64,000 bases of DNA from Podarcis bocagei (taxonomy: Eukaryota), in the NCBI GenBank assembly GCA_964188305.1, contig OZ076889.1. The stretch is one strand, 5' to 3'. The notes under the pieces are model-generated. The model worked only from the letters and a program-made list of their open reading frames with translations. It had not been told where the DNA came from and did not search any database. Positions 12,270-37,859 of the stretch are shown piece by piece (the first letter of the stretch is position 1; the number at the start of each line of letters is the position of its first letter). The position numbers and the translations under genes are program-made.

Positions 12270-12429
12270 TACTTGGAAAGGTGTCAACAAATGAATGGCA
12301 AAAGTCTGGCTCCTGGGAAGACATTCTCCACTACAGAGACACCAGTAAATAATGCACAATTTTCTGAGGCTGGCCAAACTCCCAAATACCCCAGCTTTTG
12401 TGAGGCCAGGAATAACTTCACTTTGCATT

Positions 12430-12880
12430 CTGAATGCGAGCCAATCATTCCACTTTCCTCAAAGGGCCCCGGTGGGACAAGGGCCCAGTCTCAGCGGAGA
12501 GAGGTGGTGAGTCTGTGCTCTATGAGCAGGAATCGGTTCCAATTAATCCCCTCTCAGCTTGGCCTGCCCGCTTCATTACCTCCCCTTGATGAGAACCATC
12601 AGTGGGGCCTGTATGATTTTGCTAATTAGCCTCACTTCGTTTATCATTTCCATTTTCTCTCAGCGACGCACGGCTTGCTGGGCGACAGCTTCATCTCCTG
12701 CTGAAACAATGCGGCCCCTTCTGTGCCTGTCTCACTTAGCGCTGTCACTGCAGCCATTATGAAATTGGGGTTTCATTTACACACTAATTAAACATTACAG
12801 CTTGTTCACAATTACAACACGGGGATGAGGAGGTAACTAATTACTTAAGAAATGAGCTAACATTTATCTCCAATTCTCTT
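12430..12880. promoter_or_regulatory. Putative conserved non-coding enhancer-like block
   Basis: Dense TAAT/ATTA cores (CAATTAATCC, GCTAATTAGC, CTAATTAAAC, CAATTAC, CTAATTAC), CTGTCA, retained CpGs and no repeats. Inference only. Confidence 0.5.
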
Positions 12881-14042: not shown

Positions 14043-14128
14043 AGTATTATATGTATTGCACAAATGTTCTTAAATGGAACATTTAAGTATTATATGTATT
14101 GCACAAATGTTCTTAAATGGAGCAATTA
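14043..14128. repeat. Tandem duplication, 43-bp period, 2 copies
   Basis: agtattatatgtattgcacaaatgttcttaaatgga is identical at 14043 and 14086. Confidence 0.95.
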
Positions 14129-14299
14129 ATACCTAGAAGGACAGCTATTACCAAAAGGACACTCGGCTCAAAATCAGAACAAACTGCCAAAATGTGTGCT
14201 TATTGGTTTCATGCATCTCCCACTCTTCCTTTAGAACTAATTAGTTAAGAAATGAGCTAACTTTTATATCAAATTCTGCTCCCCTTTGTTTTACCATGT

Positions 14300-14432: not shown

Positions 14433-14994
14433 CAAATGTTTTCATACACTCTGTTTACAGAGAAAAACAATTGTAGATCCACCATTCCATCAAAAGCCAG
14501 GGATCCTAAGGGCTAGGGCAATATTGCAGGAAGGGTTGGATGGGCCAGGCCCAGAATAAAACCTTTTCCTTGAGATGGGTTTCCAGTCAGGCTATCAGAG
14601 CTGTTGCCAGCATTTATATATCCAAATAGGTGCAGGCATGACTGTTGTGCAATACGAGAGGCCAAGAAGGGAAGATGGCCCAGGGGTGGGGGTGGAGAAG
14701 GGGCACAGATGCAGCTAACTGGCTGGGTAGGCATGATGTCTGTCTACGTTCTCAACTACAGGGGTTGAGATGGACCTTGCACACACTCTGATGTGTTCAA
14801 CTCAGTGACGGCCAACTCATCTTGAAGAGACATTTTCTTCAGGGAGGAATTAACATTTACAAATGAGACCTATTAGAGTAAATAAAGGCGATTGTCATTT
14901 GGCTCAGGAGGCAATGGAGATCATAGGCTTAGATACAAATCTGATTAGTGAGATGCGCCATTTGGAGGGGGAGGCAGCCTTTGGCACTGATTGG

Positions 14995-15020
<26 letters not shown>
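14995..15020. repeat. (TG)n microsatellite
   Basis: Directly visible. Confidence 0.95.
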
Positions 15021-15025
<5 letters not shown>

Positions 15026-15608: not shown

Positions 15609-18219
15609 CATTACTTTTAAACTAGCATACAAAAAAAACAAACCTGTTACTGAGTTGAGTGGTCTGATTAGAATGCAATAATGCCCTCATATACCATGTC
15701 ATGCTGGGGTAAAAGGCCATAAGCTCCAATAGATTTGATGGCAAAACCAGCAAGAAAGGAAAGAGGAGAGGAAAGACAAATTAGGATCACCAAAGTAAAG
15801 CACCAAATGCTGTTGCCTACAAACTCAACTGAAGAAGAAAAATGCCTCCGTACCTGAAAATGCTTCTTAACTGTTTTGGTAACCTGAGGAGGGTCTTTCC
15901 TAGTAAAGTATCAGAACAGTAGGGAGGCTGACCTGGAGCAAGTTCCAAACAAACTGAAATTGGGGGTGAGGTGCTGCAACTTTTAATCCACGTTTCCCAG
16001 AAAGAAAGTCTGATTTATGCAAATAGAAATGTGGAGCTTCTTGAAAGAGAACCAGTACGCGACACACCAATCTTGTGAAGTAACTTGCTGCCTGTTTTTT
16101 CTAGTGATACTCACCACATCATCACAAAACCACAAAGAAAGAAGATATGCACAAGGCCTGGTGAAAACTGGAGTGGCAGAAGATTTCACACTAACAGCTT
16201 GCCACACGCAAGCATCACCCAGGTTCACTGCAGCCAGTGTTGCTTGTGTTAACTTTAAAAAAATAAATGCCTGGACATTATAAAGGTCCCCAATTGTTCC
16301 TTGGCTACATAATCCTGGAGTGTACCATGGACAGGGGTAGTTTTGGCTCTCACGAGAGCGTGCTTTAGGAATGCGTAAAATATATGGGCCTAGAAATAGT
16401 TAAAGAATGAACAGGGATGGGGCTCTGTGGACTTTAATAATAGTAACTCCTCATTCTCATAGTTTTTATCCTTCCTGTCTTTGGCCTACAAAAAAATTCT
16501 CAGCTAAACTACTGACACCGGCTGGGAGCTTAGAACTCCCAAATCAAACAGGGCCCTTGATTCTCCAGCACATAATTGTGCTGCCCTTTCACCCCCACCT
16601 TCAATCAGTGCCGTTTAACTATCTCGTTTAGCCTACGCGACCCACCCCTCTGCTAACTAGCAGCCATATTCTTCTCATTAGGACAGAGGCTGCTCTTGCT
16701 TTACAGACAAGTAGAGACAAATCTGTAATGTCTCTCTCAACACAGTTATATATAGAAAGGGTTTGACGGGGGGGGGGGGTCAGGCAATCATGGTCTCCCA
16801 CAAAACAGCCCAGCTTGCATCTGTCTCAGCCTGAATAATAAACCAGAAAAATTACTGTATTTACCTTGCTCTTATTCCAGTAAATAAACATCAGGAAAGG
16901 GGGGGCAGTGGTAGGGAGGTTCACTCACCACAGAGTATATCTTTATACAAAATGGCTGCCCTTACTGTGGGACAAAATGTTTCCAAGGTAAAGAGACAAG
17001 CACTCTCACAAAGCCTTGGGTAGTCTTTGTTCATCAGGAGTACCTTTCTCCAGAACAAGAAAAATTATGACTTTTTGTTCAAGAGCAAACTGTACCTCTC
17101 TGCAGTAGTGCAGCTAGCAATGCTGGGTGAAGTTGGGTTAATTATTCATTCTGTGTACTCATCCTCTGCCTGAGAGGTTCACTTTTAAACTTCTCAGTCT
17201 TATGGGTCACTCAGAATCCAGAAAAACCCAAGTATCACTATGCCAAACAAAATATCCCCAATCCTTCTGTAGTCTATTCCACCAATGAAGCATCCATATG
17301 CTATTATGTACACACACCTATTCTCTTATGTACCATTCCACTAGCTCTGTATTTGCTGTATTGTAGCGGTCAACTATCGGGCATAGAAAGCAGAATGATT
17401 CTCTTCAGCACAATGACCAGGACCTCTGACATGATAAATCAGCATCACCCAAGCCAAAGTATATCAACTGTTATGCTCCTGTTGTTCCAGAAATTTTTGG
17501 AAGCCCAACATGAAAAATTGAGAATGGAATACACCAATCTTCTGCAGACTATATATCAGTAACCATTCATTGGCCAATATCTATTACTTAGTTTTCAGGC
17601 CACAGGAAATACAGGGCTTCCAGGTACCATCCAAACACCAGGCTCGAGATTTTATATTGTTGAAGGATAGAACCTCAAGTATAGCTTTGAGAGCTATTGA
17701 AATGAAATTATATTAAGACAATGTTCAGCCTTTCCCATCCTATACTGACACCATGTTAAGGTACTTAACTGTATAAATAGATTTTCAGAAATACATCAGT
17801 GGAAGAACTGGTTCATTTCCTTACTCCAATACATGTAGGTGTGTTTCTTTGGTAGAGACCTATCAGTAAATAATATAATAAGTATCAATAGAAATAAAAC
17901 CAGCAGCTGCCCCAAAGTGATGGAAGTTATATGAGACAAAGATGTAGATCAGTTAATTAGGTTTTCCTCCTTTTCTGATGATGAGAACCCCAGCTGGGGG
18001 GGGGGACCTTACTTCTTCCTAAAAGCTGGTGGCCTACCACAGAACATGTCTTTTGGGTGGTGACACCTATTCTTTGAACTCCACCTCCTAACACAGTGCA
18101 GCAGACTCAAGAACTTGCCCCTTTAAAACTTTCCTTTACAGGCCTGCTTTTTATTACAAGGGCTTGGGGTTTTTGTTTTTTTAATGCCTACTTCAAGTTT
18201 ACCATGTTGTTCTTTTTAT

Positions 18220-18745: not shown

Positions 18746-20219
18746 GATCAGCTATTAAAAACATTCCAAGTTCATTATCTTGCAAAGACCAGCCAGGACA
18801 TGGGGCAGTGAGGCTTAAACCAATTAACAGAACACTTCAGTTTTTAAGCAAGAAGAAGCTGTGAGTCAGGTCTTCAAGAGAGGGATGTCAATGCAACAGG
18901 AAGAAACATGTCACGGGTCACAGCAACTCTGAACAGAGGGGCCTGTTAGATCTTAACGATGGTTGGGAAAAGCTGGTCAACTCAGGTCAGATAGTGCTGT
19001 TGCCAAGTCTGGGCTCTGCCACAGAATGCTTCCAAAGAAAGAAAACTTGAAGTTTTCAAGAGCAATATAGAAGTCAGCCAGATCCCCCAGAAAACAGGAA
19101 TCCTGCAAGCAGCACAGTGCGAAAGTGAATGATCAAGCTCCTCATATACTGGCAAAAATCTCATGTAGTCCCTAAACAAAATACCTGGTGAACGTATGCA
19201 GGAATTTCACCTCTGATTTTAGTGAAAAGAAAACAAACAGATGAAAATAACAAAAATGAATCAAAAGGATTAAACAAAAAACCCTGGACTTAGTTTTAAC
19301 TAGGACAGCTCTTTCTGTTAGGCTGACAGAAATAAATACATAAATGGATGGTTAAAGAGATTATTTTGTCCTGACCATGAACACTTAAGAAGAAAATGCT
19401 CAACATGAAAGAGCCTCTTTCAGAAACAAATGGTGTCAAAGGAAAAACACTTATTCTAATTATAAAATTAATATTATCATACCACCCAGCTTCGTATCTT
19501 GCTTCTGAGTGAAGTTACATAGAACCAGAAATCAAAGGCAAGGAAGGGCCTAGTAGGTATGCAGAACAAAAACAGGATGTGTTATGAATTCCAAAGACGA
19601 ATTCCAATTTGAGAAGTATTTGGCATCTCTAATTATAAAAAAATCTCTGAGCCCAGTTTTTAAACTGCTCTCCTTTCCTCATCTCAAGCCAGGTAAGACA
19701 AGAGGAGAAGCTGGTAGTTGTTCTGGGCTTAAAAACTTCCAATAGATTAATGATTAAAAATTCAGTAATACACAATCAAAACACTCATAGGTAAACCCTG
19801 AAAGAGACAAAACATCACGGCAGAGACAGTCAAGGGTGATCAATTTTGAATGAAACCATTTTTTGGCCTTAAAATCCAGAACATTTTGTGACGACATCCA
19901 CCTGTCTCCAGTTTGAAAGTCCTGATAACTAGTTCCAAACAGAGCAAACTAAATTTATGCCCATTTAGCACAGTGGCTACGGTAAGTCAACATCCCATTA
20001 TTAGCTGTCCATTAGTCAATTGGCTTTAGGTGGGAGAACTATGTTTAAAAGATCACGCTATACCTCACACATGCTGGGTAGCAAGACACCCCTTACTGTC
20101 CCCTTGTCCAAAGGGAAACTTCTTTAAAGGCCTATTTCAATCCTTGCCAACCCTTTTTTGCTAGAGGAAAAGGGGAGGGATAGTAGGAAGTTAAAGAGAA
20201 TTGTCTTGCTACTCAAAGC

Positions 20220-21020
20220 CTTTAACAACTATTTTTAATATCAGGCTGAGGAGCTGGATTTTGAAATGAAACAGCCAGTTCCCCTTTGATGCAGGAACTA
20301 CAGATCTTGAAACAAGGTCCATTCCCTCCTCCTTCACTAACTAACAGCCATATTTCTCTCATTAAAAGGCAATCTGACTGTATTTCCAAACTTCTTAACA
20401 AGGCGATCACCGTAATTTGAGGTTTCTATTATCCCTGTCCTATTTCAGTTGGATCGAGAAGCAGTGTGCTCTTTGGGGGCTGGGGGGGTGCAGTTGCCTC
20501 TGTTCACCACCCTCTCAAACTGCTGCCAGTGATAATGATGACTTGTGAATATTGATTAAACAAGACTACCGAGAGGGGGATGTTGGCTTTTTTTTGTTCT
20601 GGGTGGAAGCAGATAATAAGAAATAAAATATAAGCCAAATCAAAATAAAGTTTGTTTATCTCCCATCTAGAGTTTGGTCTTATACCTCCTGGAGAATACA
20701 AATTAATCTGATGCACCCTTTCTCCTTCCTATCACTTCCAATCTCCCACCACCCTGTCCCCTTCCCAAACGCATAGAGCCAGCGCTCCAAAACACCTCCC
20801 TCTTTGGATCGTTCTCTGCCCGCCCAGCACCCTCACTCCTCTGAGCCAGCTCTGCCAGATGGATGCAATTTGCATAATATCACCAGCAGAGGCTGCAGGA
20901 TCAACAGGGGTCAGGCTCTGACATCTCCAGCACAGTCTATCTCCGAGTGCTAATTTGGACTGCATTGATCTCTCTTTCTGATTTCTTTGTCATTTATGTC
21001 TGCAGCAGTTTGACAGGAGA
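20220..21020. promoter_or_regulatory. Putative enhancer-like block(s) with POU, TCF and homeodomain motifs
   Basis: Repeat-free. CCTTTGAT (TCF/LEF) near 20283, AATTAATC, octamer ATTTGCAT at 20868-20875, GCTAATT and TGACAG. Inference only. Confidence 0.4.
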
Positions 21021-22959
21021 TATGGAGACAGGCAAGGTGGGGGGGAGAGAGGCAAGTGGGGGGAGGCAAGGAGAGAAACAAAGATTGTAGTTACAGATGT
21101 CTTTAAGGAAAGAAAAAGATTAAGCCAAGGACTCCGCTGAGGGTCGAAGCTCAGAGACATCCTAATTACCTTGTTCTTAGGGATTCTTGTACAGACTTAG
21201 AGGGGGGTCTTGTCATGGAACTTGCAGGAAAGGAAACTTGTTAAATTGCAATGGAGTGCCTCCAGTTGGCTGCTATCCACACACCCCCACAGCCCACCCC
21301 CATGCCACACCTCTCAGTGGTTTCTCATTAGGTAAATGCAGGGCTGCTAAAAGCCAGAATCATCCACCAGCACATCCTCACCTCCACACCTCTCCAGAAT
21401 GTCTCATTAAAAACAAAAACAAGGCCGCTCCATAATGCAGCCAGGTGCCAGCTCAAAAAGCTGGCAATGAGCAATCTCCCTGCCACACACCCATGGTTTG
21501 GAATGTAATGGGGAAAGTCCAGCCCCTCTCCCCAGCACCATCAGTGCCCAGCCACAATGCAGGATGCTTTCTGCTTTGATTATGTTTTCACATTGTTTTA
21601 TGCATTTAATATTCAACTTTAATGTCAACCAACTTGAGGGCCTTTGATAGACAGAAAAGATGTGGCAGGGGTCAAGCATGCTACAAATACTCTCCTACTT
21701 TAAGCAAAGCTCTGTTAGATACACCTATTCAAAACATTCCATTTACACTCATTTTTATGCACTTTGCACAATCTTTTGCCTGCCCATTTCCCAAAGCATC
21801 AAGTTTCAACATGTTGGTAGTCAGCCAGCATTTGAAGTAGGCCCCAATATCTCCTCTTCCCCAAGTCCCCTGTCTCTCCCACACAGAAGACTTGGGAGAA
21901 GAATTCAGTCTCTCACCACATACTAGGCTTGAACCCTTTCAGAAACAGCACTGGGAAATGTTTCTATCCACTTGAAAAAGTTTCCAGATCATGGTGCAAG
22001 CAAAATCTCTTTACCTCTCTTTCCCCCAAGCTCTAAAGAAGATTGGAGAGAGAAGGGATCATTCTAGCATCTTGCACAGGATTCACTTATGAGTGTCTCC
22101 CAGACCAGCATCAGCTATGGAGTCTGCACAACCTGCTTCCTGATTTGGATGAAGAGCTGTTTTAAGAAGAGGAGGAGGAGGAGGAATATTAAAAAATGAG
22201 TTTTTCCAAAGTCCCATGCTCTTTGTGTGCATGTGTGAAGCTGTACAAAACAGCTTCACAAACTCTGTTCCTAGCCTTTTCTAATGTACTGACATCACCT
22301 CAGTCCTCAACTTCAGGGAAGGCAGGTACAGGATATGTGTTTGATGTGTTGCAGATCCAGCTTGTGAAAATCCAGACACAGGCTAAGGATGACCCTCTCC
22401 TAACACTAGTCAGAGCCTGAGGTCCAGACATTCAGTGACATGAGTGAGCACATTTAGACAAGGCTGTTCCATGCCCTCACCAAAATCCACCATTTAATCC
22501 GGCTAACTGCTGGGGTTTTTTTCTTCTAAAAGGAGAAGCATTTGAATATGCATGTATTTGTGTGGTTTAAACAACATACACATGAATGAGTAAGTTTCTC
22601 TGCAGCATTCCTCCCCAATAGTTTTGAAGAAAGAAGCTGCACTAATTACTGCATGCAGCAAAAAAAAACCAAAACAAACCCATATGGTCTGGACTGTATC
22701 ACTAGCAATCAAGCTAAAATGGCCACTGCAGCTCACTTGGCAGGGACCATCATGGATAGCCTACCCAAAATATTATGGGTCTACCTTTGCCATTGCTGGG
22801 TGTGGAAAGTATGTTGCAGTGAATAGCAGAATGACATAGAAAGACAAGAAGTCAACACAAACACCCAATCATATTCTATCATCCCACCCCCACCCCCACC
22901 CCGCAACCCAGTTTCTTTGTTAACCATAGGAAACAGTTGAAAGGCCTTGAGTCCTCCAT

Positions 22960-23420
22960 TGTAACATGCATAGGAATAGAGCAGCAGTGATAAGAACATG
23001 CCCCCTGCCGCTGCAAGGAAAAAAGAAGCGCTGAATCTTTGCTAAAAAGGGCTGAACGCTGGCAAGAGTGTTCTGTCACTTTTGCGCACAGTAATCCACT
23101 GTGCCACTGAGTCCCATCAGAGGGATTTTGAAAACTTAAATGACTGAAAGCAAAAGAGCACCAGCTCAAGGTTCCCAGCCAGCCCAGACATCCTAATTAG
23201 CTTTACACACACTCCCACTCGGAGGGGAGAGAGCACACACACAAAAAGGACTGTCACTTTGCTTTTTTCTCTTTCTAAAAGCGTGTCTGCGCTTACTGGC
23301 TTTCCCACTGTGACACCTCTCACAGTAGTTAATTAGAATCATGTCACCACGTTAATGCGCTCTGACTGGACGCTGACAGACATTCGGCCTGTATCCTGCC
23401 CAAACCCCCTCCTCCCAGAC
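22960..23420. promoter_or_regulatory. Putative enhancer-like block containing copy A of a 54-bp module
   Basis: Retained CpGs, CTAATTAG, CTGTCA, GTGACA, TTAATTAG and TGACAG; 23327-23380 matches 27466-27519. Confidence 0.5.
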
Positions 23421-24789
23421 CAACAGTACCTACGCAAAGCACCTCTCTGCTTCCAAAAACCTCTCCTCACATCCTGGGCAGAAAGGGCCTTGTCTCGTCC
23501 ACCCGCCTGCCAGCCCATACTCTCTCCTTGCCAGAAATATCTGCCATATTGCCTCACTCACAGAGCATCCGCTTCACCTGTTTTGAGCTTCCTGACCTTT
23601 AGCAGCACTAATTCAAAATGACACTGCTCATTTGATGACATTTCTGATGATTTTTATTTTAGTCTCTTTTAATTATTTAACTCTGGAGTCTTTGGCCCTA
23701 TCCCTTAGGCTGTGAGACAGTTGGCCCCCTACCATAAATCTGGTCTAGGGCCACACCCCACTCCTGCCCATTCTCTGTGAGTAAGGGGCACCACAGTGAA
23801 TCAAACGTAGAGCAAGATGTTCAAAACAGACTGATGTGATGTAGTTTGAGAAACCTTAAAACTGGGAACTGGGCCATATCAGTCGCAAGATCTCCCACTT
23901 ATGTCAGAAAACCATTGCTTGGAAAGCTATCAAGGGACCAGAATTTCCTCAGAGTTAGAAAGGCACTTTCTTTTTAAATACAATCAGATTCTGAAGAATC
24001 TGAGCAGCTACCAACTTCATCATGGCCATGCACACTTCAAGACTGAGCTGCATCTAACAAAGTTGTTCTGTTCATGTAAGGAATTCTTACACAATAGAAC
24101 TTCCTCTCCTCACCTCACCTCATGTACCAATCTGCTCTCAAGTTTTCCCCAAACCAGCAGGGCAAATTTGAGGAGTGGGGGGCATGCGGGGAAAAGAGAG
24201 GGAGGGGAAGTTCCTTGCATGAACAGGACAATTTCACTGGATTCAACCGTCTAAGAGGATTTCGCTACAGTTTGTCTGGAGCTTCTGCCAGGTAACTTAT
24301 CCATAGAAGCACATGGCACACAGGTCTTCAGGCATGCTAAAATTAGTATGTTTTCAGTGCCTTGGTTCTCTCTACCTTGAAGTCAAACAGTATGAAGGAA
24401 AGATATGCTATTAGATCATGTCTTTAATTCCCCCCCCCCCCATAATCACATTTTTCAATTCAATTCAATGTGCTTTTTTGGCTATTAGAAAAACTTTGAA
24501 ATATTTATATCTAAAATTATCAAGGCACACTAAGCACAAATGAAACAAACTATTTAGGGCAGCAGAATATATTCCAATTCAAAAATTTTCCACAGTATCC
24601 ACATTCACTGTTTGATACCCAAGACAAGTATTAATGAGAAGAGTATATACCCTGAAATGCAGAGAGGCCAAGAGAGTGCACAGAAACAAGAAAGAACATG
24701 CACAGTAAATAAAGTCCAAAAAGACTAAAACAGTGGATGAAGTGAAGCCAGGGCTCCCTTGCTGAGTGGTATGGAGTTGGTTGTGTGCT

Positions 24790-25025
24790 GACTGAATCTG
24801 TTAACAAATGAATATGCTGTCTCCTAGGTGAGCAGATCCAGGATGTGATGAACAAGTTGTCAAGTCTTATCAAGTTCACCGATCATTATTCTTTCTTGCT
24901 TTTCCCCAAGGTAATGAATTACACCAGAGACAACTATGAACGTATCACATTCGACTACAAAACTCTGAGGGGGGAGGTGAAGGACCTTGGGGCTCAGGTG
25001 ATGTCCTTGTCAATTCTTCCTGTAA
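24790..25025 (+). mobile_element. CR1 LINE ORF1 remnant (SGNH esterase-like domain)
   Basis: Translation ICCLLGEQIQDV..KLSSLIKFTDHYSFLL..ERITFDYKTLRGEVKDLGAQVMSLSILPV matches the recalled CR1 ORF1 pattern VCCLPGARIQDV..RLIKPxDRYPFLL..ERITADYxALGRRxKExGAQVVFSSILPV. Confidence 0.8.
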
Positions 25026-25309
25026 AACAGGAATGGGGAATCTTCAACCCACCCATCCTCTCCATGTGGATCCTGACTCTCTCCCCAGGCTATGTCCCCT
25101 TTCCCCTCACTGACTCACTGAAGTATGTCTCTCAGGAACCACAAGCGCTGAAAAATCCTGTAGATAAAAGTGCAGACCATTTTTTCCCCTTGCGCATTGC
25201 TGCAATGTGTCCCTAAGCTGTGGTAACAGAAAATATACAAGGGAAGTCCACCTTCCTGGGCAGAATGTGCCCTTCATTGTGAAAAACATGCTTATGATTT
25301 TGCCTTCTG

Positions 25310-25415
25310 GGATGTTGTGCTCCTATGAGCTTCCCTAACAGTTTGGCCATTGTGGGGACAGCATAATAGACTACACAGGCCTTTGGTCTGGTCCAACAGG
25401 GCTGTTCTTATGCTC
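25310..25415 (+). mobile_element. CR1-type 3' tail fragment nested within the CR1 ORF1 relic
   Basis: ttggccattgtg...tagactacacaggcctttggtctggtccaacagggctgttcttatg is the reverse complement of the 18220 family. Confidence 0.5.
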
Positions 25416-25584
25416 CACTAATCACATATTCCTCTTTTGGCTCCACTCCTTCCGTATTTTAGGTCTGGCCTGATTGCTCGTGTAACACAGTCCCTGGGAA
25501 GGAATTGGTTCTTGGGCTAAAAAAAATATTATTTTGGCTGCAAAAGGCAGATGACACAAAGAGTGGGGGGGGGGGATGAATACA

Positions 25585-26335
25585 TCAGGTGAATAACTAG
25601 CAATGCAAATGCTGTTGAGAAGAAAGGTTGGTTTTTAGGGTCACCAGCTTAATTTTCCTCAGTAAAGGACTACAGGAAAGTAGCAGGTAAACCTGATCAG
25701 GAAGGTTTTAAACTAAAGCCTGAAGTTAAGTACCTCATCCTGGTACCACTACTGATGAAGGGACGGCTGCAAATATTCAATATAAAGGTAAGCATTAGAG
25801 AAAGAGATTTATATATTATAGGAGAAACTGCAGGAGGAGATGGCCGATCTGGGTGTATAGCAAAACACACAATAAAACAGCAGGAGACACATTGCAGCAG
25901 ATTATTTAAGGTTTTTTATGTCTATACACTACTGCACACAGCAGTAGTAGGAAATAAACAAGATGAGCTTGAACTGCTTGTAAAGCAAGGGAACTACGAC
26001 AATAGGTATTAATAGGACTTAGTGGGATGGCTCCCATGACTGAGATGTAGCAACTGAAAGATACAGCTTGTTAAAAGAGGACTGGCACAACCAAAAGGGA
26101 GGACGAGTAGCAGTTTGTGTCTGCACCTGCACAGAAAAGCAAGAAAGTGAATACAGTGGGTCTATGGAGATTATATGGGTAGAATGAAGTGGGAAATTAG
26201 CAAAAATAATACAGTGATGAAGTCTGCTACAGACTCCACAGCAATGTGATAAGTAACACATTACAGATGTTTCAGGAAAGGAGGAATTAGTAGTAATGGG
26301 GCACTACCTTGGTATCTGCTGTGGGGCAAACTCCG
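25585..26335 (+). mobile_element. CR1 LINE: end of ORF1 and ORF2 endonuclease remnant
   Basis: NLIRKVLN* marks the ORF1 end near 25690-25716. GNKQDELELLVKQGNYD, WDGSHD, KGGRVAVCV, IWV, VCYR and LVVMG are APE-endonuclease motifs, interrupted by frameshifts. Confidence 0.8.
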
Positions 26336-26337
26336 CT

Positions 26338-26700
26338 GTTTATTTATTAATTACAAATTATACTCTGCTTGATGTGGGGGGCCCACCCCAAAGCAGTTTA
26401 CAAACAGATAAAACAATAAAACAGAGAAAATTCACAACCATACCTTAAAACATACAAAAATTAAAATGCTAAAACAGATTTAATTACTTCAATTTTCTAA
26501 ACATATGGGTGGGCTTGTATAAACAAGAATGTTTATACCAAAAAGAATATGGTGAAGGCACCTGCTTGATCTCAATAGGCAGGGAGTTCCGAAGTGCAGC
26601 TGATGCCAAACTAAATGATAAGAGTTCTTACAAATGAGGAAGAGGCATTATGTGGTAGCTGTAGTAGTGCCAATTCCACTGATCAAAGCAGTTGAGTGGA
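26338..26700 (-). mobile_element. L2 LINE 3' fragment inserted between CR1 pieces
   Basis: tttatttatt tail, an A-rich UTR, and gaaggcacctgcttgatctcaataggcagggagttcc, typical of a reversed L2 3' region. Confidence 0.6.
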
Positions 26701-26704
26701 GATT

Positions 26705-27030
26705 GTAAGGAGGCATAATAGCAATCTTCAAATATCTAATGGGTTGTCACATGTAACAAGCTTCTTTTCTCCTGCTCCAGAGGCTAGGACCCAAACTAAT
26801 GGCTTCAAGTTACAATAAAGGAGATTCTGACTAAACATCAAGAATAACTTTCAGACAGTAAGAGGTTTTCGGCAGTGGAATGGACACCTATGAGTGGTAG
26901 TGGGCTCTCCTTCCTTGGAGGTTTCTCAGCAGAGGTTGGGTGGCCATCTGTCATGGATGATCTAGTTGAGATCATTGCAGGGGTTGGACTAGATGACCCT
27001 CAAGGTACCTTACAACTCTACAATCTGTGA
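26705..27030 (+). mobile_element. CR1 LINE 3' end (ORF2 C-terminus and 3' UTR)
   Basis: atcttcaaatatcta...aatggcttcaagttaca...tctccttccttggaggttt...ggttggactagatgaccctc...caactcta is a canonical CR1 3' end. Confidence 0.9.
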
Positions 27031-27399
27031 GCAGTTCAACAATGAAACTAACTAATCCTAAGATCTTCAAGCAGAGGTTGGACTGCAATCTGTTGGGGGT
27101 GGTTTAAGCTCAGGATTTTCAGAATCAAGGAGGGCATTGGACTAAATGAGCTAAGAAACTAGATTTCTAAGAGGTTGTTATGGACTACCAAAGGGCAGCC
27201 CAACGTACTAGCTTCCAGAACAAAGAACATTGCATGACAAGATATGTCATTCCTATAGTAAACAGCCCCAGCTTGCTGGCACACCCGGCAAGTGCATGAA
27301 CACACCCACACAGGCACAATCATACCTGTCCTTTTACATTAGACATGAAAGCCTGCCTGTGTCTCTCCAAACACAAACTCTATATACAGAATGAGGAGT

Positions 27400-27720
27400 T
27401 TGTAAAGATAAGAGGCTGCACCATGGCAGCTCCCCATGGGGCAGGCGGGTGGCCAGCTTGGTGGGAGTTAATTAGAATCTTGTCACTAAGTGAATGCGCC
27501 CTGCCTGGACTATGACAGATGCTCCCCTCTGACACTGGGGGCCAGGAGACAATCCACATCAAGCTACTGCAGGATGACCCTTTTAACACAAAGAGTAAAC
27601 TCACTGCACAGCAAGTTGAAGCTCATTAAAACTGTCTACTCTGTGAGCATCCCATTAACCTCCCTGTTAAAAACACGCAATCCCTCTTCTTCTTCTGCAG
27701 GCCTAATTAATGCTCAGGAT
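27400..27720. promoter_or_regulatory. Putative enhancer-like block containing copy B of the 54-bp module
   Basis: TTAATTAG, TGTCA, TGACAG, CATTAA twice and CTAATTAAT; 27466-27519 matches 23327-23380. Confidence 0.5.
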
Positions 27721-28529
27721 CAGGAACAATATAACACCCTAACCTTCCTAGATTTCCAATCAGTAAATGAAAAGAGAGAGGGGAAGCCAGAAAGATACAG
27801 ATGCATCACCTGCACTTCACACCATATTGGTGGTTGACCCTTTCAAATAGGTAGGCTTTCCCATGAGGCTTTCGTGAGTTAAGGGAGATGGCCTGTGCAT
27901 AGCCAGGGCAGTGTAATCAGGCTGCCATTTGCACTACATGCTTTGGTTGGGCAGCTTGTAAGGCATCTACATTCGATTTCCAAAATTGTTCTGCATGCTA
28001 GGGTATATGTGTGCACACATGCAGTTCGCAATTCCTTCCCACACTCCAAACAGCCCCATAGTCAGTTCATGGGTGCTAGCTTTTTGATTCATGCAGCAAT
28101 GAGTAGATTAGGCTACTGCATATGCACTAACTAGGGGTTTGCTGGGAAAGAAGTCAAGACAGAAAGGAAGGAAAACAAGTAGTCCTTGGCAAATCATCAG
28201 TAGAGTTGTCTAACCAGTGTTCAGCACTTGCTGAACAATGAAGGCGAAGAGGCTCCCTCAGATCTCAGCCCACTCCATTGTAGGGTGTGTAAAGGAAAAA
28301 CAAACAAACAAAACTGCTACTTCATGGCAACTCGGCCTAGAGGCCAGCATACAACTATAACTGCAGGGTCCTTCTTCGATCCTTTACCAAGGAAGGGAAA
28401 GCAAAGGAACTCCATGCCACTACAGGGAAGCTAAGTAAACCATGCACAGCCAGAAGCTTGAGGTGACTTGTATGGGAGAAGCTGCTCCCCAAAATACACT
28501 AGGCACAAACCATTTGGGCTTTTATAGCC

Positions 28530-28880
28530 ACCACTTTAAATCAGGCCTGAAAGATAATTTGCAGCCAAGAAACTGAGGAAGAATTGCCTTAATATATTCT
28601 CTGTGCCCATTTCTCAGAAAGCTCACCAAAGAATTCTGTGCGTGATAAGAGTTTCCAAATCATTGTCAAGGACAGTCCTGTGTAGACTGAACATTACAAT
28701 ACTTTATCTGAGAGGTTACCAAAGAATGGAGCAGAGTGAGGACAGGTATGTCTCCCAGGCTCCCTCAGCCACTGTATCAGAGGAAGAAAGTGAGAGATTG
28801 CATCCAGAACATGTGATTCTCCACTATAACAGACTGCCAACCATCACACCTGTTGCCTAGATTCAGTCTAGCATCCATCC
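28530..28880 (-). mobile_element. Degraded L2 LINE RT fragment
   Basis: acattacaatactttatctgagaggttaccaaagaatgg is a decayed reverse complement of the L2 HALVTSRLDYCN motif. Confidence 0.6.
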
Positions 28881-31800
28881 AGCCCAGAATGTGCTGCTGC
28901 TCCTTGATCTGATGAAGAAGAGCAACAACAGAGCTGAATCTAATCAGAATATCTGATTTGAAGTTTGCTTCATCTCTAGTGAGACTACCTGCCAGTCAAC
29001 CCCTCTTTCACTATTTCTATTGGGGCTCCTGGCCTCCCCAACTGAAGTGCTTGCTTTTGAACTGAAGTGTTCTAGACCAAACTCACATGACATTACACCA
29101 TTTGTGGCAAGTAACACTTACTAAAGTCACTGTCAAGAATTTGGAAATCACATATTTCAGGAATATTTTTCTATATAAATGTGCAATAGTTACTGAATAG
29201 GTCCAGAGAAAAAAACACATTACTGTCTTCCAGTAATGGAAAATATTTATTAATTTTAAAACTACACTTGACACACATTGTTAGGGTCTACACAAACTGT
29301 AAAAGAGCCACGACAAGCTTGAATGAATCACAACTCCGAAAGCTGCTTTACCATTGTTTGCAAAATGGAGTATGTTTGGGAGAGTAGGGAGACATACTTG
29401 GCACAATACTACAGTGAGAAGGAAAACTTCCCTTGTTAAAATGAGAAGTCAGGCTCGACAACCTTACTCAAGGGCTAACTGCTGGGCTCAGAGCAGATAT
29501 GGCGCAGTGTTTAACCTCAGCGCTACAACCTCAGATGGCATGCAAGTGCATCACACCAAAAGCAGCAGCAGTAGCAGCATGTGCTCCCACCTCAAGGCTG
29601 TTTAACTGAAATGAAGAAGCAAGAGCCCCTGGAAAGAAAAGTCAGTCAAGAAGATTGGGGAAAATAAACCACTATTGTGCACTGCTATCCAGCAGGGCAA
29701 AGCCAACTAATGACAGTCCGATAAATGTACAAGGTAATTAAAGGAAGTGACAGATTATATTCTAGGGATGTTTGTTGCTTTAGTGTGGTAAGAGGAGACA
29801 CTATAAACACTCCTATAAAACACAGAGAGGAGATGAATGGTTCTAAGGGGTCCCTAGCAACAACATGAAACAGGTTTTGCATCAGGCTCCCCCTCCAGCC
29901 CAATTTGTGGGCTTTTCCTACAGCATACATATATTGCTGAAATGAATTTACACTCAGGCACAGAAGCAAAATTTCAATGCTACATCCTATCAATGAAGCA
30001 ACCAGATCCATAGTTCAAAAGGAGCTTGCTAATTAAAAGCTGGTAAGCTTTAAATAATTCATCTCCTTAACTCATATTGATTTGGTAGTTTAGTGGTTAG
30101 GATCTTGAAACAATATTAAACAGCTTCCTCCAGGCTCGGGTGGTGGGTAACTTTCTCACATAAGTCTCTCACCCTAGGAAATGTAAATGCACAACAGCAA
30201 GAAGCAGACAGAGGTGGACACGCCTAGGCAAGGGCAAAGGAAAGGAGAAATGCAGCTAGTCAGATTAAAAGGTCAGACATTTGAAGGGTTTTACATAAAG
30301 AACAGGAAACAATGAACAGGTTGTATCAATATCCCTCAATCTGAGAGCTTTTCATATTTTCCTGGACTGGCACGACACACAGGTTCCTAAAGAACAAACC
30401 CTCTAGTAATTCTCCCAGGCACAGGACAAGGAAGCACAAGATATATATTGGTCCATACCAGCTAGGACTGTCACATTAGAGATTTTAGGACTTTTGGGCA
30501 AAGGCTCAGAGAAGTACAGCAAAAGCTGAAGAGAAGTACAGTCTATACTCTCCTAGATGTATGCTAGCAGGACTGACAAACAGCCAGCTCTCCAAAACTT
30601 GTTGGATCCAGAAGGTGGGATGATCATGGCTAAAACACACACACTTGAATAGAAAAATGGATTCTAAAATCAGTGGCCAAGTGAGGGGTGGTTTGGCATG
30701 ACCTCAGGAAGGACCCTACCATGATGATCTGGCAAAGCCCCACTATGGGGGAAGGAAGACAAAGGCATTGCACTTCTGAGGCATCATGTTCACCGTTGCC
30801 ACTCAAATGCAGCAGCAAGTGTCAAGTGGCTTAGAAACATATATAGAGGTAATGGATCTGGATGCTAGACTGACAAAAGATAAACGATATCAAAGTGGAG
30901 CATGCTTATTTCTCTACTACCAGCTCCTTTGGGATCCAGCATCCTTTTGTATTCCAGAGGTAGTGGCAGCCCTAAACCTATATGCTCAGGTTTTTGCCAC
31001 ACCAAAGACAGTGATAAGCTGCCTTCCACAGATAAGAGAGCCACACATCCTTGGGAACTGCAGATGAGCCTGCCACTATACACTATTCCACAAACAGAGA
31101 AAAATAAACCTGGACTGGAGTGAGAGAAGGAAGTCATGCTACTGACCTATCCCACTGTGAGGCCTTCCTATGTGCTGTAGGTTCAGGCCTTTGTTCATGT
31201 CTAAGAGTCCATTCTTTGGCCAGCTCCCCATGGCAAAGCTGTATGCCTGCAAAAGAAAAAGGAAAAAGACATTTTAGATAATTGTACAACAAGAGGATGG
31301 CTGAGTATCACAAGGCCAGACCCTACTGAAGCATTGTAAAAAGTTACATAGTACCTTTAGGCCCTCTCTTGCTGATATTTGGCTGATTACTCAGACAGAA
31401 CACACAATATGATCTGCCCAGTGCTTTTACTTTGGGCTTTCCATCTCCACATAATTCTGCAAATATAAATTCTTACTCTCTTGTCTCAAGCTTTCCTTCT
31501 ATCTCTCGCAACTTAGTGGAGATATTGTTGACTTGCTGTCTTAGTTTATTCCAGGTCCCACAACACAAAATGCCAAGTTCTCCACATTTTCTGCAAACAG
31601 AATGTTGAAAATTGAATTAAGCAAATTTTCATTGACCATTTCCACTAATAAATCAATCAGATTTGATTTGTTGTACATAAACACCATTTACCATCAGCAA
31701 CATTGCCAATAACTCATTCAGAACTGTGCCACCCACACTGATTAAAGTACTCCAGCCTTAGCAGATGCCAACAGGAAAGTAGAAAAATATAATGCCAAGC

Positions 31801-32356
31801 AACAGTCATAGAAAAAAAAAAGCAAACGCATAAAGCAGGTGACGAGGTATGCAAAGATTAAATATGACATTCCCCTAAGCTGCATGGAGTATCCCTCTCA
31901 GAACCCTCTGAAATCTTTATCAGTCACTCTTGCATCTTTTCAGATTTTTCTCTGCACCATGTGGGCAACACACATTTTAAAATTAAACCTCAGAGTCTAT
32001 CTGACATACCTCCTGTGTCACCTCATTCCTTCTGCTCCAGAGACAGATGAAAGCCTTTTTCTTATTAATTTACAACCATGTGAAATTTTACTAATCAAAA
32101 TATAATCAGGTTAGGTTCTAAAGTCCATTATTAAATTGGGTGGGGAGCTGGGAGAGAGAATTTGCCTGCTGGTGGAAGCCACCTAGAAGAAACCCCAATT
32201 ATTTGTTTTCCAATAATGAGAATAAGCTTTTGACTCCCGAACCAACTATGACATTGTTAGTCCGAGATCCCAAAGGCACCCACAAACGTTTCTGACTAAA
32301 CAATGTAATTGATGTTCTACCAATACAAAGGGATTCTGCCCCGGAGCCTCTAAAGC

Positions 32357-32490
32357 CAGCCTTTCTCAACCTGATGCCTTCCAAATGTCATGGACTGCAA
32401 CTCCCACCAGCCCCAGCAAGCATGAGCAATGGTCAGGGATTATGGGAGCTGCAGTCCAGTATATCTGAAGGGCACCAGGCTGAGGAAACT
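32357..32490. mobile_element. Short quasi-palindromic hAT-like MITE (lizard family)
   Basis: cagcctttctcaacc...ggactgcaactccc...gggagctgcagtcc...ggctgaggaaa; related pieces near 50350-50410, 51315-51440 and 62260-62372. Confidence 0.7.
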
Positions 32491-34544
32491 TTGCACTCTT
32501 TCTCATGCTCCTATATGTTTGATCTCTAGCCATAATGTTTAGGGACTTGCAGCTCTGTCCGAACCTGATTACTTTTGTATTGCAGTCTACAAGAGTTATC
32601 CAAAGATGCTATGTGGATTTCCATTTCAACAGCTAAGTTGAGAGACCACTCCATACAATGCACTGTAACCACTTTGAAGAAGGTTGGATAGAAGCATAGT
32701 AAGAACAATAAACTCTGGAACTCGTCATCAGTCATTCCCCCCCCCCCGCCGCTGCCGCGCTCTGCCTTGAGCTTAACATATTTAAGGAGATATTTGAATG
32801 CATTAGTTAAGCAATAGTTATTTTTCTATTTGCTTGAATCCCTCAAACAACTTTAGGGATTGCAGGTTTTTGTTATAAAGATATTATTTTTGGCTCAGCT
32901 ATTCTAAGTTTAATTATGCCTAAAAATAAACAATGCTTAGTGCTATAATATGAATATGAATCTAAGCCGTTGGGTGAGGAAACTGATCATGTCCTCAGCT
33001 AAATACTGTTAAAGAAAATAAGGTTTAAACCAAATGCTTGTTATTTCTCCAGGTATCCATTAAGGCAAAGTTTCTAATTAATAGATGACAGGGACAATGT
33101 TCTTTTGGAAAGAAGGGTCCAGCATAACAACTTGTGAGTAGAGTTCCATTTAGGGCTCCATTTTGACTCTCAACCAGCTTGTGCAAGTTTAGTTTGGGTA
33201 ACTGGCTCTTGGCAGCCACTGTCCCTTCCTTCATTCCTGAACTGAGATTCCAAGAGTCCCTTCTTTGAGGCCCAGGAGATAACACTGCTGTTTGCCATCT
33301 GCTCTTTCCAACTCACTCTGTCTCATCATGCAGCAATTGTCAACAGCACTTCTAGCACATATTAGACCACAAGGCAAGGCATTCACTGTTCACATCACTG
33401 AACTGTCCAGGTGCTATACTTGAATAGCTTGGGAACCATGTGCTGCTCCAAGGCTATATTTCAGCTAACCCTACAATAATTATAGAGGAATATTTGTTCA
33501 TGAGCAGAAGCTTGAATACCCAGGGTTTATCTGGAGCAAGGGAAACACCTTACTGGAACAAACTTGATGGAAGAGGATCCTAGACTAGTTCGCAGAGGGA
33601 CAAGGTATAAAAGAAATGAGCAAATTTAAGCGTGCAATGTGGAAAAGTGCACTAACAGCTGCACAAAGCCTCGGGGCCTTAAAACACCACAATAATTATG
33701 ATCTGACAGCAGCATAACTTCTCCATCACAAGGTATTACAGAAGCTGTGTCATTGTGAGATATTAATGGTGCAAGGCTTAGCTATACTTAAGTGCTGGGC
33801 TGCCATGTGAGCCATTGTTCCCAGACAAGATCATGTCAATCCACAGAATATATCACCGCCACGTCCACTTTATCTCAGCTACCCCAGAAATAGGCAGAAC
33901 AGGGATCTTAACAGAGTTAGCAGCTATCCTTTTCCTTACCTGGCTAACCACAACTTCGAGAAGATAACAGCCACAGTAGTGTCTGAGGACTGTTACACTG
34001 GAAGGGGGGAATCAAGCCCAACTTTGCTCCTGTAATCACTAAAGTATTTACTGGGTCAGCTTGTGGGGGAACCCATACCTACTATACTGTTAAGTGTTTA
34101 AAAATTACTCACTGGGGAATCTTCATCTAATACAAAACGGTCTCACACTAGTTCAAAATGCTCCTCTATCTGCAGGTGCCCAAATACGCACAATTTCCAC
34201 CTTTCTGATATGCAGAGAATTACATTTTTCTAAGAGGGACACAGAGGGACCAATTTCATTTAATATTTGCTTTCAGATATCTTTCAGCATAGTATGTACT
34301 GTATTTCATTTTCTTCTATTAGCTTTTTCTAAGCCTTCAGAGAAACTTTAGATCAAAATAAAAGCGAACAAAGAGTGCAACATCATTAAAATCAACCTCC
34401 TTACATTTGGTATCCTCAAATCTTCTGGTAACACTGATTTCCTTACAAAAGGGATCCAAGGTACTATCTGGGAACTTAAGATTTCTTAGCCTAGGACTGT
34501 TGAACACACAGAAGAACAAGCCTTAGTGTACAATTCTGCCCCCT

Positions 34545-34935
34545 GTCAAGCAGTGACAGAGCTTAATGTGCTCTATGGGGAGCTGGCTTTGGGCACTAGG
34601 CCTGGTGGCAGACAACCGCTGCATTATAAAGATGTCTCCAAATGTGACATGAAAGCTAGCAACATTAACCCCACCATGTGGCAATTCCTTGCAGATGACC
34701 ACAGTGCTTGGAAGCAATCCGTCAGGTTGCATATCCACAGCAGTGACCAGAGGAGGAATGACTGCTGGGATGAGCACATAGACAAGAAATGTCATGGTGG
34801 AAGCCTTCATCTGCCCCAGCTGCAGTAAAATATGTCTCTCCCTTATTGGTCTCTACAGCCACAGTAGTTCCTGTAATTCGCCAATGGTTTGACTTAACCC
34901 CCAATGGCCCACTCTTGCAAGACAGACGGATGGCA
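34545..34935 (+). mobile_element. RTE-clade LINE 3' fragment
   Basis: ORF 34526..34828 encodes VLYGELALGTRPGGRQPLHYKDVSKCDMK...W..LADDHSAWKQ, the RTE ORF C-terminal motif LYGEL..G.R..GR...RYKD..K. The 3' end reads gacagacggatggcaaca. Confidence 0.85.
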
Positions 34936-35004
34936 ACAAAATTAACCTCCACTGTACACAGTTCACTGAAAACTCCAACTCCACATGCAGTGCAGAGTGG
35001 AGAA

Positions 35005-35530
35005 CTCTACATATCCAAATGGAATGTGTAGAGTTCTGTACATCCCATCTGAAAAACACAGAAAAAACTGCAACAAAAATGATCAAGTGCTGGAGCACAT
35101 TCTCTATTAGTAAAGCCTTTGGAGCTTTTTAGTTCAGAAAAAGGACAACTAAAGGGAGCCATGATAGGAGCTTTATAAGATTACTAATGACACAGAGAGG
35201 ATGGATAGAGATTTTTCTCTTTCTCTCTTAATATTAGGACTCAGGGTTGCCAAATGAAATTGATCAGCAGCAGATTCAGAGCAGACAAAACGAAGTACTA
35301 TCTCACCCAAAACAAAACTACCTTAGGCAATTTACTGGCATGGCATGTAGCAATGGCCACTACCATACATGGCTTTTAAAAAGGACTAGATAAATTCAGT
35401 GGAAGAACAGGTCTATCAAAAGCTATTTGTCATGGTAGCTAAGTGGAATCTCAATGTTTAGAGGCAGGGTACCTTGGAAGGCATACAGTGTGGGAAGACT
35501 CATGACTTCTAGGGGACTTCCCAGAGTCCT
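35005..35530 (+). mobile_element. Degraded CR1 LINE RT C-terminus and 3' region
   Basis: Decayed PHLEYCVQFW-type codons, then aaaatgatcaagtgctggagcac, ggagctttttagttcagaaaaaggacaactaaaggg and ggcttttaaaaaggactagataaattc. Confidence 0.7.
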
Positions 35531-35576
35531 CTGGAAGGTCACTATTAATATCATCTAGACTATTGACCAGTTAAAA

Positions 35577-35580
<4 letters not shown>

Positions 35581-35623
<43 letters not shown>
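35581..35623. repeat. (CA)n microsatellite
   Basis: Directly visible. Confidence 0.97.
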
Positions 35624-35627
<4 letters not shown>

Positions 35628-36204
35628 ATAAAAATAAAACTGTCTCAGTACAATTATTAAATATGGCTAAAGTGACCCTTGCCCATTTATCACCCTCCTA
35701 GTGGGTCCCCTGAAGGCGAACCTCCATTTGGTGTCATTCCTTTGATGACTAGCCGCCAGTGGTGACCCCTTACAAATAAGCCCAGCAGTGAGTCAGAAAC
35801 ACAGAAGTCAGCCCTTATTGGGTGGGGCAGATCCTTACTAAGATGCTGGCTTTGATAGGCTCTTGGTCTGATCTAGCAGATCAGTTCTAATTATCTTATT
35901 CCCATTTTAAGGGCATGCAAAGCTGACTGCTTTGGCACTCAAGTATTCTACTCACAGAAGTTTTTGGAAAAGCATCCTTTATGAGGCAGTCACTGCAAGG
36001 GAAGCAAGGAGTGAACACCCCAAGGAAAGCATTTACAGTCCCAATAGCCACACAGATACAGAGCTAGGAGACTCCTGCTGTACCACCTACAGCTCTCCTG
36101 ACTAGCAAACTCTCTCTTTCAAAGCCAGTGTATTTAAGGCCCCTCCCCACCAATCAGTGCCACTGCTGAGATGTCCCTGGAGTTCCATCACAGGGTTTTG
36201 GGTA

Positions 36205-36440
36205 GTTAATTTATTGCCACGTATGTAGCCATTTATGCTGCTTTGTTACTCCTGCCTTAGCAAAACACAGGGGCTCCACAGGTAATTAATAGACAACACT
36301 GCTAATCCTATTGGGAGATGATTAGCAATTAAAACTCCTAATTAAGTCTATGCATAATTCACTGAAATTACATCCCTGTGTACACAATAGAGAGGTTTCC
36401 TTCGCCTTTGACAAATACGCACTGATATCTTTATTACTCA
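36205..36440. promoter_or_regulatory. Homeodomain-site-dense putative enhancer
   Basis: GTTAATTTAT, GGTAATTAAT, GCTAATCC, GATTAGCAATTAA, CCTAATTAAG, CATAATT and AATTAC within about 170 bp. Inference only. Confidence 0.4.
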
Positions 36441-37859
36441 TTCAAATCACTCTGGCCCAGGATCTGGTCTATTACCCACAAGGGAGACTGAACTTCTGGT
36501 TTTCTTCCTCTTCTGTTGAGCTGTACTTCATCCCTCCATCCCCTGCCATGCAGCAAGAAACTTCTCTTTTTTATTATTTGGATGGGGGGAGCTGTTCCAC
36601 CATAATACCAGGAGGGAAAAGCAGCTCAGCTCTTTTTAAATAGGCACAGTGGTGCCCCCTCCTGGCTTTAACTTATATTTGGAAGGTGCCAGAAAGGAAA
36701 GTCGTGCAAGCAAGTTAGTGGAAGATACATTGGAAAATGTAATCTTCAACAAAGGGGCAGAAAGCTTAGCCAAGAAGGTGAAATGGTAGAACTCTCTCAG
36801 CCTCATCCAAGAAGCAGCCAGCAAAATTAGGCTCCACTTGCTAACTACTGTGCAAAAGTTACCAAGAATTTGAGACTCAGAAGCACTTCACACATTACAC
36901 TTTGCTTATATAGTTCTGCATACTTCTGTGTATGGAATATCACACACAAAATGTATACACTATAAAGAATACAAGTGTCTATTTCACTGCATGTTTCCTT
37001 CATGCATGTTCTTCACAAATGATCATATAGATGTTTTATAATAATACTTCTTCCTACACATAAAGGCAAATTGCCTCGCTCTCTGTATGGCATGGGTGCA
37101 TCCATACTTTGCTGGACTAATTGCATCACATGAAAAAAGACGTGGTATAAATGTGATGTATAGGAAATTGTGCTAATCTGAAATGGAAGCCTCATCTCTA
37201 CATTGCATAGAATAATGCAGTAATGAAGAGGTAAAATGGACTATCCCACTTTAAGTTGTAGACAGGGGAGCATTCAAAAATGTGATCTGTGTAAAAGCAC
37301 CACCTCCCTGCAAGCGGAAAAGTAGCAAATCAGGAAAAGTAGTTTTCCCTGATGTGCTAGTTCCTTTAGTTAAATGAAGAGGTGCTTTTGTTCACATGGA
37401 AGAGCATTCAAAAACTGAATCTCCTAATTGTGGTTTGACATACTGCAAGTACCCTCTGCCACCTCAGGATTCTAACACCTTGTTCAGTTGTGTCCTACAC
37501 ACGTGTGTGCATATTCACACATGTGGCCTAAGAAACAAGCGCATTAAATGACCCTGAACCTTAATGAACAGAAATTGTCACCTAAACAAAATCCAGGCTG
37601 ACACCAGAGGGTGTCAAACCCTGTTGATAGCAGCTCACTGAGGCTCCAGGTCAAGATTTCCCCCAGGTCCCATAACAGGAATTGCTGGGTGTTGGGCCTG
37701 GATCCTCATATAGATAAAGCATGTACAATACAGCCCCACTTCACATTCTCTAGGTCTATCAGCTTATATGGAACAGCCAGTCTTCTAAGGCTTACATCTG
37801 AGCCCCGAAGTCAGGATCAGGACCACAACTGGGCTTTTCTTTGCATCACATTCTGCTTT

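Follow-up and report, generated by a model that had tools for sequence, protein, structure and literature searches.

We analysed two 54-bp sequences, copy 1 (c1; 23327-23380) and copy 2 (c2; 27466-27519), in a 64,000-nucleotide stretch of the genome of the lizard Podarcis bocagei (assembly GCA_964188305.1, contig OZ076889.1; hereafter the window). They are probably the paralogous core copies of an ancient conserved non-coding element (CNE) in the last intron of ERI3, and likely serve as a transcription-factor docking module of a developmental enhancer. Both copies occur in the same order and orientation in a turtle, a second sauropsid and two mammals, and a single copy occurs in the sterlet. 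Across the copies, substitutions have largely spared three short motifs, TAATTA, TGTCAC and TGACAG.

A duplicated 54-bp core in the lizard window

An earlier note, made from the letters of this DNA, had reported that the two sequences match at 46 of 54 positions, ungapped and on the same strand, and both proved to be exactly as quoted. The pair is real. Given the base composition of the window, a match of at least 46/54 has a probability of 5.9e-20 per offset, corresponding to E ~2.4e-10 for a self-comparison of the whole window at all offsets and on both strands. When the window was scanned with a 21-nt core pattern allowing up to 3 mismatches, c1 and c2 were the sole matches (0 in 100 shuffles), and a repeat search of the window returned them as a two-copy family.

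Sensitive word-7 BLAST of 19000-25400 against 25401-32000 yielded no collinear similarity beyond the 54-mer. We therefore rejected a 4.1-kb tandem segmental duplication of which the pair would be the last visible trace. As the earlier note had stated, no terminal inverted repeat, target-site duplication or tail was seen at c1 or c2. The flanks, which it had described as unrelated, are indeed unrelated to each other in the lizard, but each is conserved across species, and the copies are not free-standing modules. The note had also pointed out that the mismatches fall between invariant blocks. For two copies this placement is uninformative, because 8 random mismatches in 54 positions leave a perfect run of at least 14 in 61% of cases; the observation became both true and significant once other species were added.

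Both copies lie in the last ERI3 intron

A scan of public metagenome contigs (241 million records) with the 19-nt pattern TTAATTAGAATCNTGTCAC returned 21 loci. Nineteen were chance partial matches, and the remaining two were contigs containing both full copies (L009 and L015; JGI Ga0181612_133036 and Ga0065711_1031302, 12.9 and 30 kb). In viral and genome contig sets, the same pattern gave only chance partial matches in phage or bacterial DNA, none of which reached the rest of the core. L009 and L015 agree at 99.9% identity and represent one species, hereafter X; both samples thus yielded assembled host DNA. X belongs to the sauropsids and is not human, because the contigs lack Alu-probe, 7SL and tRNA-SINE (short interspersed nuclear element) matches, its exon peptide is of the GSWP/LNLQ rather than the eutherian GCWP/LSLQ type, and its c2 lacks a 3-bp deletion common to vole and camel. 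The contigs are GC-rich nuclear DNA of the ERI3 locus, probably from a bird. L009 aligns collinearly to window positions 22912-38398 in about ten blocks (81-91% identity) with unalignable sequence between them, and its copies are 1147 bp apart.

The host gene was recognized from codon-phase bias in the cross-species alignment. In the block 31141-31259, mismatches between lizard and X were distributed 1/1/9 by codon phase, and the exon within it is 100% identical to residues 254-286 of the protein P0006 (RNase_T) and, when searched alone rather than as part of a spliced model, to crocodilian and other ERI3 entries. The ERI3 peptide HSGI|DD is interrupted by an intron. As tblastn with full-length ERI3 found no other ERI3 exon within the window, the window covers parts of the last two ERI3 introns, with the gene on the minus strand. 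Measured from the penultimate exon, the two 54-mers are found 3.6 and 7.8 kb further downstream, within the last intron. The last intron exceeds 31 kb in the lizard, and the preceding one exceeds 33 kb; in the vole, the last intron is ~26 kb long, with DMAP1 arranged tail-to-tail just beyond ERI3. Together with RNF220, ERI3 is among the non-transcription-factor genes with the most ultraconserved elements (PMC13513235), and the hindbrain-active VISTA enhancer hs655 is annotated to RNF220/ERI3/DMAP1 (PMC11704014).

Conservation across amniotes

Through ERI3 gene models, we reached the orthologous introns of the green sea turtle (L041; GCA_000344595.1, assembly identity from PMC7851172), the reed vole Alexandromys fortis (L042), the wild camel Camelus ferus (L044) and the sterlet Acipenser ruthenus (L043). 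Both copies were found in turtle, X, vole and camel in the same order and orientation as in the lizard, with copies that start 4139 bp apart in the lizard, 2043 bp in the turtle, 1147 bp in X, 1979 bp in the vole and 2045 bp in the camel. The orthology of each copy is fixed by copy-specific flanks common across species. Among sauropsids, the cores are identical at 51-53 of 54 positions for c1 and at 45-50 for c2; between eutherians and sauropsids, these values fall to 38-44 and 33-36 of 54, respectively, and the vole and camel c2 are identical at 51/51 positions. Because both copies are collinear in lizard, turtle, X, vole and camel, this comparison indicates that the duplication predates the amniote ancestor and that both copies have been under purifying selection since. 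The suggestion in the earlier note of an old duplicated conserved core is thus borne out by synteny in all five amniotes.

Each copy forms one end of a different, larger conserved non-coding block (Table 1). The block that ends with c1, CNE1, is 82% identical to X over 327 bp (with one further block), 80.5% identical to turtle over 492 bp and 71-72% identical to vole and camel over 146 bp. The block that starts with c2, CNE2, aligns to X without gaps over 332 bp at 90.7% identity and is 83% identical to turtle over 426 bp, ~70% to vole and camel over 249-257 bp and 68% to sterlet over 97 bp. The locus thus shows the syntenic conservation between distant vertebrates (lizard versus X, turtle, vole, camel and sterlet) that is typical of vertebrate CNEs. 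It is also non-coding: stops occur in all six frames of the core, and mismatches are spread evenly over codon phases in CNE1 (18/19/17) and CNE2 (9/9/13), without the periodicity seen in the true exon (1/1/9). The spacer block between the copies had no match in vole, camel or sterlet and was seen only in sauropsids.

Table 1 Coordinates of the two cores, their orthologues and associated features. Lizard positions refer to the window; others refer to the contig named.
Feature	Species (contig)	Position	Strand	Basis or remark
Copy 1 (c1), 54-bp core	Lizard	23327-23380	.	Strand unassigned; pattern search and repeat listing
c1 motif TAATTA	Lizard	23330-23335
c1 motif TGTCAC	Lizard	23342-23347
c1 motif TGACAG	Lizard	23374-23379
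Copy 2 (c2), 54-bp core	Lizard	27466-27519	.	Strand unassigned; probable parental copy; pattern search and repeat listing
c1 orthologue	Turtle (L041)	37864-37917		52/54 versus lizard
c1 orthologue	X (L009)	12025-12078		51/54 versus lizard
c1 orthologue	Vole (L042)	11407-11460
c1 orthologue	Camel (L044)	14969-15022
c2 orthologue	Turtle (L041)	35821-35874
c2 orthologue	X (L009)	10878-10931		49/54 versus lizard
c2 orthologue	Vole (L042)	9428-9481
c2 orthologue	Camel (L044)	12924-12977
Single core	Sterlet (L043)	51317-51370
ERI3 penultimate coding exon	Lizard	31148-31246	minus	Peptide AYSFAMGSWPKNGLLDMNKGLNLQHIGRPHSGI; codon-phase bias and protein match
CNE1	Lizard	22912-23385	.	Ends on the plus strand with c1; 23240-23382 also conserved in vole and camel
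CNE2	Lizard	27463-27794	.	Starts on the plus strand with c2; 27466-27721 conserved in mammals, at least 27466-27562 in sterlet
Spacer block between the copies	Lizard	23567-23712	.	89-92% identity to turtle and X

Selection is concentrated on three motifs

To locate the constraint, we tallied parsimony steps at each core position across the nine sequences from species other than the lizard, so that the test is independent of the two copies from which the motifs had been defined. TAATTA, TGTCAC and TGACAG, 18 positions in all, accumulated 4 steps and the other 36 positions accumulated 50. Constraint is therefore focused on the three motifs (P = 1e-5 against random positions, 4e-4 against random contiguous hexamers), in agreement with the earlier proposal that substitutions avoid them (4 of 54 steps). 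The same proposal had listed AATGCGC and CTGGAC as further invariant blocks, but these are not kept in eutherian c2. Its rigid spacing holds in part: the TAATTA-TGTCAC distance is fixed in 11/11 sequences, but the TGTCAC-to-TGACAG distance is fixed in 9/11, being 3 bp shorter in eutherian c2 through a deletion.

The eutherian copies have changed in different places. In c1, the 3′ half is nearly intact and TAATGA replaces TAATTA; in c2, the 5′ half and TGACAG are kept and the sequence between them has diverged. This looks like complementary degeneration of the two copies.

TAAT cores are homeodomain sites, and TGACAG/TGTCA is the site of Meis/Prep/Tgif (TALE) factors. No Pbx-Hox TGATNNAT site was found in the core. 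Across the conserved blocks of the window, TAATTA is enriched 8-fold (P = 2e-6) and TGTCA 2.5-fold (P = 0.002). The pattern of constraint fits selection on putative homeodomain and TALE-type sites. The motifs would then be bound by such factors and the elements would act as enhancers, with ERI3, DMAP1, RNF220 or another gene as the candidate target.

An alternative, which we consider improbable, is that the conserved blocks act in RNA, as regulators of ERI3 splicing or polyadenylation, as a poison exon or micro-exon or as exons of an intronic non-coding transcript, with the core serving as an RNA-protein platform. ERI3 is listed with RNA-binding genes rich in ultraconserved elements (PMC13513235). 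Read in the ERI3 sense, moreover, c1 contains ...TCTGTCAG|... with GTGACA 25 nt later, loosely resembling an acceptor followed by a donor. The AG of this would-be acceptor, however, depends on core position 47, where c1 has C, lizard c2 has A, and eutherian c2 and the sterlet have G; it is therefore not conserved. Stops in every frame, the lack of codon periodicity and the position of the additional exons predicted for ERI3 in vole, camel and turtle, which overlap neither copy, also argue against this alternative, and the enrichment of TAAT across all blocks fits recognition at the level of DNA. On these grounds (stops in all frames, no phase bias, a variable AG and model exons elsewhere), we rejected a coding exon or micro-exon. 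A structured non-coding RNA was likewise rejected: on both strands and for all copies, the core folds no better than shuffled sequence (z -1.1 to 0.0), and no Rfam family reached its gathering score over the window, with a chance NEAT1_2 match (E = 0.37) in 22800-27900.

Could the core instead be the relic of an ancient interspersed repeat, such as an exapted core of a miniature inverted-repeat transposable element or SINE of the UCON/Eulor/MER121 type, of which two copies landed in one intron? The shared stretch is short and sharply bounded, the same intron contains two more short duplicated conserved cores, and the case against a repeat is built on the window, the orthologous loci and the metagenome records. 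Against this, the 64 kb of lizard DNA contain two copies only, and no extra copy was found in X or in ~170 kb of orthologous turtle, vole, camel and sterlet sequence. In all five amniotes the copies are neighbours on one strand at syntenic positions, they show no terminal inverted repeats, target-site duplication or tail, and the single sterlet copy is continuous with the c2 flank, which points to local duplication. Among the 241 million metagenome records, the full element turned up only in L009 and L015, which come from a single vertebrate and represent the orthologous locus. In the sequence compared, a lizard transposon or exapted dispersed repeat is thus without support and appears very unlikely. 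The earlier note had named two outcomes that would speak against its proposal, namely many copies of a transposable element and a lack of distant conservation with evenly spread substitutions, and the evidence points the opposite way on both.

Origin of the two copies

In species other than the lizard, the similarity between c1 and c2 extends ~16 nt beyond the 54-mer on each side (upstream, for example, TGACACCTCTCACAGT versus TGGCAGCTCCTCACAC), and the duplicated unit was therefore ~86 bp long. The sterlet has one copy of the core, in an intron without an assembly gap from the exon to the next conserved blocks. Downstream of it lie ~100 bp of c2-type flank, running through ...GACAATCAACATCAAA...CCCTTTTAAC, and the core itself is c2-like at positions 22, 24 and 27; its upstream 7-mer, TGACACC, is c1-like. 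Because this single copy is joined to the c2 flank, c2 is probably the parental copy and c1 a local ~86-bp duplicate. We also considered 'fission' of one element into an upstream part with core (A-M) and a core with downstream part (M-B). This candidate was weakened, as the c1-like sterlet flank is the proximal 16 nt and lies inside the duplicated unit.

The sterlet could also have lost a copy. In that case, which we regard as possible but doubtful, the duplication would be older than the bony vertebrates and recombination between the repeats would have removed one copy, leaving the proposed function unchanged and altering the dating and direction of the event. The sterlet mosaic of c1-type TGACACC, c2-type positions 22/24/27 and c2 downstream flank is the expected product of unequal crossover inside the core, and the alignment of X c1 to the sterlet runs 44 bp further upstream at 67% identity. 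Yet this upstream similarity is not significant once the core is left out, the c1-specific distal block 23243-23309 was not found in the sterlet, and two events are needed rather than one. An outgroup is, moreover, expected to share ancestral states with each paralogue in turn.

Local duplication before the amniote ancestor thus remains our preferred account. An ancestral element a-M-B, in which a short flank (a) lies upstream of the core (M) and a long flank (B) lies downstream, would have persisted in single copy in the sterlet. A piece of ~86 bp (~16 nt of flank, the 54-nt core and ~16 nt of flank) would have been duplicated locally, with the parental c2 retaining the old downstream flank and the daughter c1 becoming the end of a second conserved block, the other sequence of which is amniote- or sauropsid-specific. 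Purifying selection would then have held in both copies a homeodomain site of the TAAT type and two TALE (Meis/Prep/Tgif-type) sites, TGTCA/TGACAG, in opposite orientations.

Several considerations weigh against this account and against an enhancer function. The enhancer interpretation draws on sequence, and the assignment of the motifs to homeodomain and TALE factors is putative. The two-copy status describes the window and the orthologous loci. The direction of the duplication is uncertain, as the sterlet mosaic fits an outgroup and also fits a recombination deletion between older copies. Finally, no site in the core groups sauropsid c1 with mammal c1 against the c2 copies, and three sites group by lineage; gene conversion or parallel change may therefore have contributed to the history of the core. 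In sauropsids, one copy may have converted the other, which would explain why turtle c1 and c2 are identical at 28/29 positions in the 3′ half when sauropsid and eutherian c2 agree there at 17/29. The site patterns (0 orthology sites, 3 lineage sites and 3/12 eutherian-c2 changes equal to the sterlet state) are, however, too few to decide the matter.

Other duplications and conserved blocks in the window

The same intron contains a second core duplicated in cis, at 12835-12877 and 14235-14277 (39/43 identical, sharp edges, 1.4 kb apart). Its first copy lies inside a 140-bp block (12731-12870) with 90.7% identity to vole and camel. Each of the two lizard copies matches the same single place in vole, camel and sterlet, and the extra copy is therefore lineage-specific. 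The members of a third, weaker pair (~16641-16685 and ~20323-20367, ~80% identical over ~33 nt) both match one and the same conserved element in sterlet (L043 54412-54455), vole and camel. Along the lizard intron, the pairs follow the order a a′ b b′ c c′, and thus arose by separate local duplications and not by one segmental event. In the sterlet, the element orthologous to window positions 1972-2063 is present twice, 470 bp apart (L043 61383-61475 and 61853-61945), reflecting either a further local duplication or an assembly artefact.

Two further repeats were seen in the window: an interspersed repeat of ~210 bp with two copies that are 84-88% identical (12059-12271 and 45986-46198), which may be a squamate SINE, and a 43-bp unit in two tandem copies (14043-14128).

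A chain of other non-coding blocks runs through the window, at 1972-2077, 8100-8223, 20852-21103, 29944-30193, 36190-36491, 37820-38453, 42005-43014, 48328-48759, 54769-54922 and 59012-59268. The chain is conserved in turtle, vole and camel, with the exceptions of 54769-54922, seen in turtle alone, and 20852-21103, seen in vole and camel alone. Most blocks are also found in the sterlet (for example, 42206-42444 at 83% identity). From this density of conserved sequence, both ERI3 introns look like a regulatory landscape.

Comparison with known systems

Beyond the pair itself, we tentatively entertain a broader scenario for the last ERI3 intron, in which new conserved elements would have been seeded repeatedly by local duplication of an older core. 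A daughter core would have gained a conserved flank, so that a new enhancer formed around an old enhancer core; in eutherians, the two copies would have degenerated in complementary halves, and the sauropsid copies were perhaps kept alike by gene conversion.

Exapted ancient repeat families, such as MER121, LF-SINE, AmnSINE1 and UCON/Eulor, have many dispersed copies. The ERI3 element resembles them in having a short, sharply bounded conserved core present more than once, but differs in that it exists as two adjacent, syntenic copies in amniotes and one in the sterlet.

Shadow enhancers offer a closer parallel, as duplication signatures are found in 33.9% of mouse shadow sets (PMC13345019). 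As in shadow enhancers that arose by duplication, two nearby regulatory-type elements at one locus share sequence and putative sites, and the same three motifs recur here in two distinct conserved blocks. Shadow pairs are, however, defined by overlapping activity on one target, and the ERI3 pair is a candidate on grounds of sequence. The two copies might be redundant or might divide the work between them; division of labour seems as likely as redundancy, because each copy is fused to a different conserved flank.

Enhancers that combine homeodomain and TALE sites, and VISTA hs655 in the same neighbourhood, provide another comparison, given the TAAT core and TGACAG/TGTCA motifs under selection at ERI3. 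The likeness to hs655 is one of locus annotation, and that to homeodomain-TALE enhancers is one of motif content; the absence of the Pbx-Hox site from the core sets the pair apart.

According to PMC2781166, which cites McEwen et al. 2006, classical duplicated CNEs (dCNEs) are found near paralogous genes on different chromosomes and derive from whole-genome duplication. Set against that description, the ERI3 pair is similar in being a multi-copy non-coding element of which every copy has stayed conserved for hundreds of millions of years, in a gene region dense with conserved elements. It differs in its local origin, with a shared ~86-bp core and copies 1-4 kb apart in one intron. In every amniote examined, both copies lie 1.1-4.1 kb apart in the same ERI3 intron; the pair thus lacks what that description presents as the defining feature of dCNEs, because it was duplicated in cis.

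Otherwise the pair is unremarkable for a locus with a known wealth of ultraconserved elements, and the type of element is known rather than new. Its interest lies in being a small natural experiment on enhancer grammar, in which the same ~54-bp core has been kept for >300 million years in two contexts. With three hexamers, and the distance between the first two of them, as the focus of selection, the sites and spacings are open to direct testing. The pair also offers a test of redundancy versus split function, and of how a duplicated core may become the seed of a new conserved element. Work on duplicated conserved elements has dealt mainly with copies at paralogous loci, and to this the pair adds a dated example of duplication in cis.

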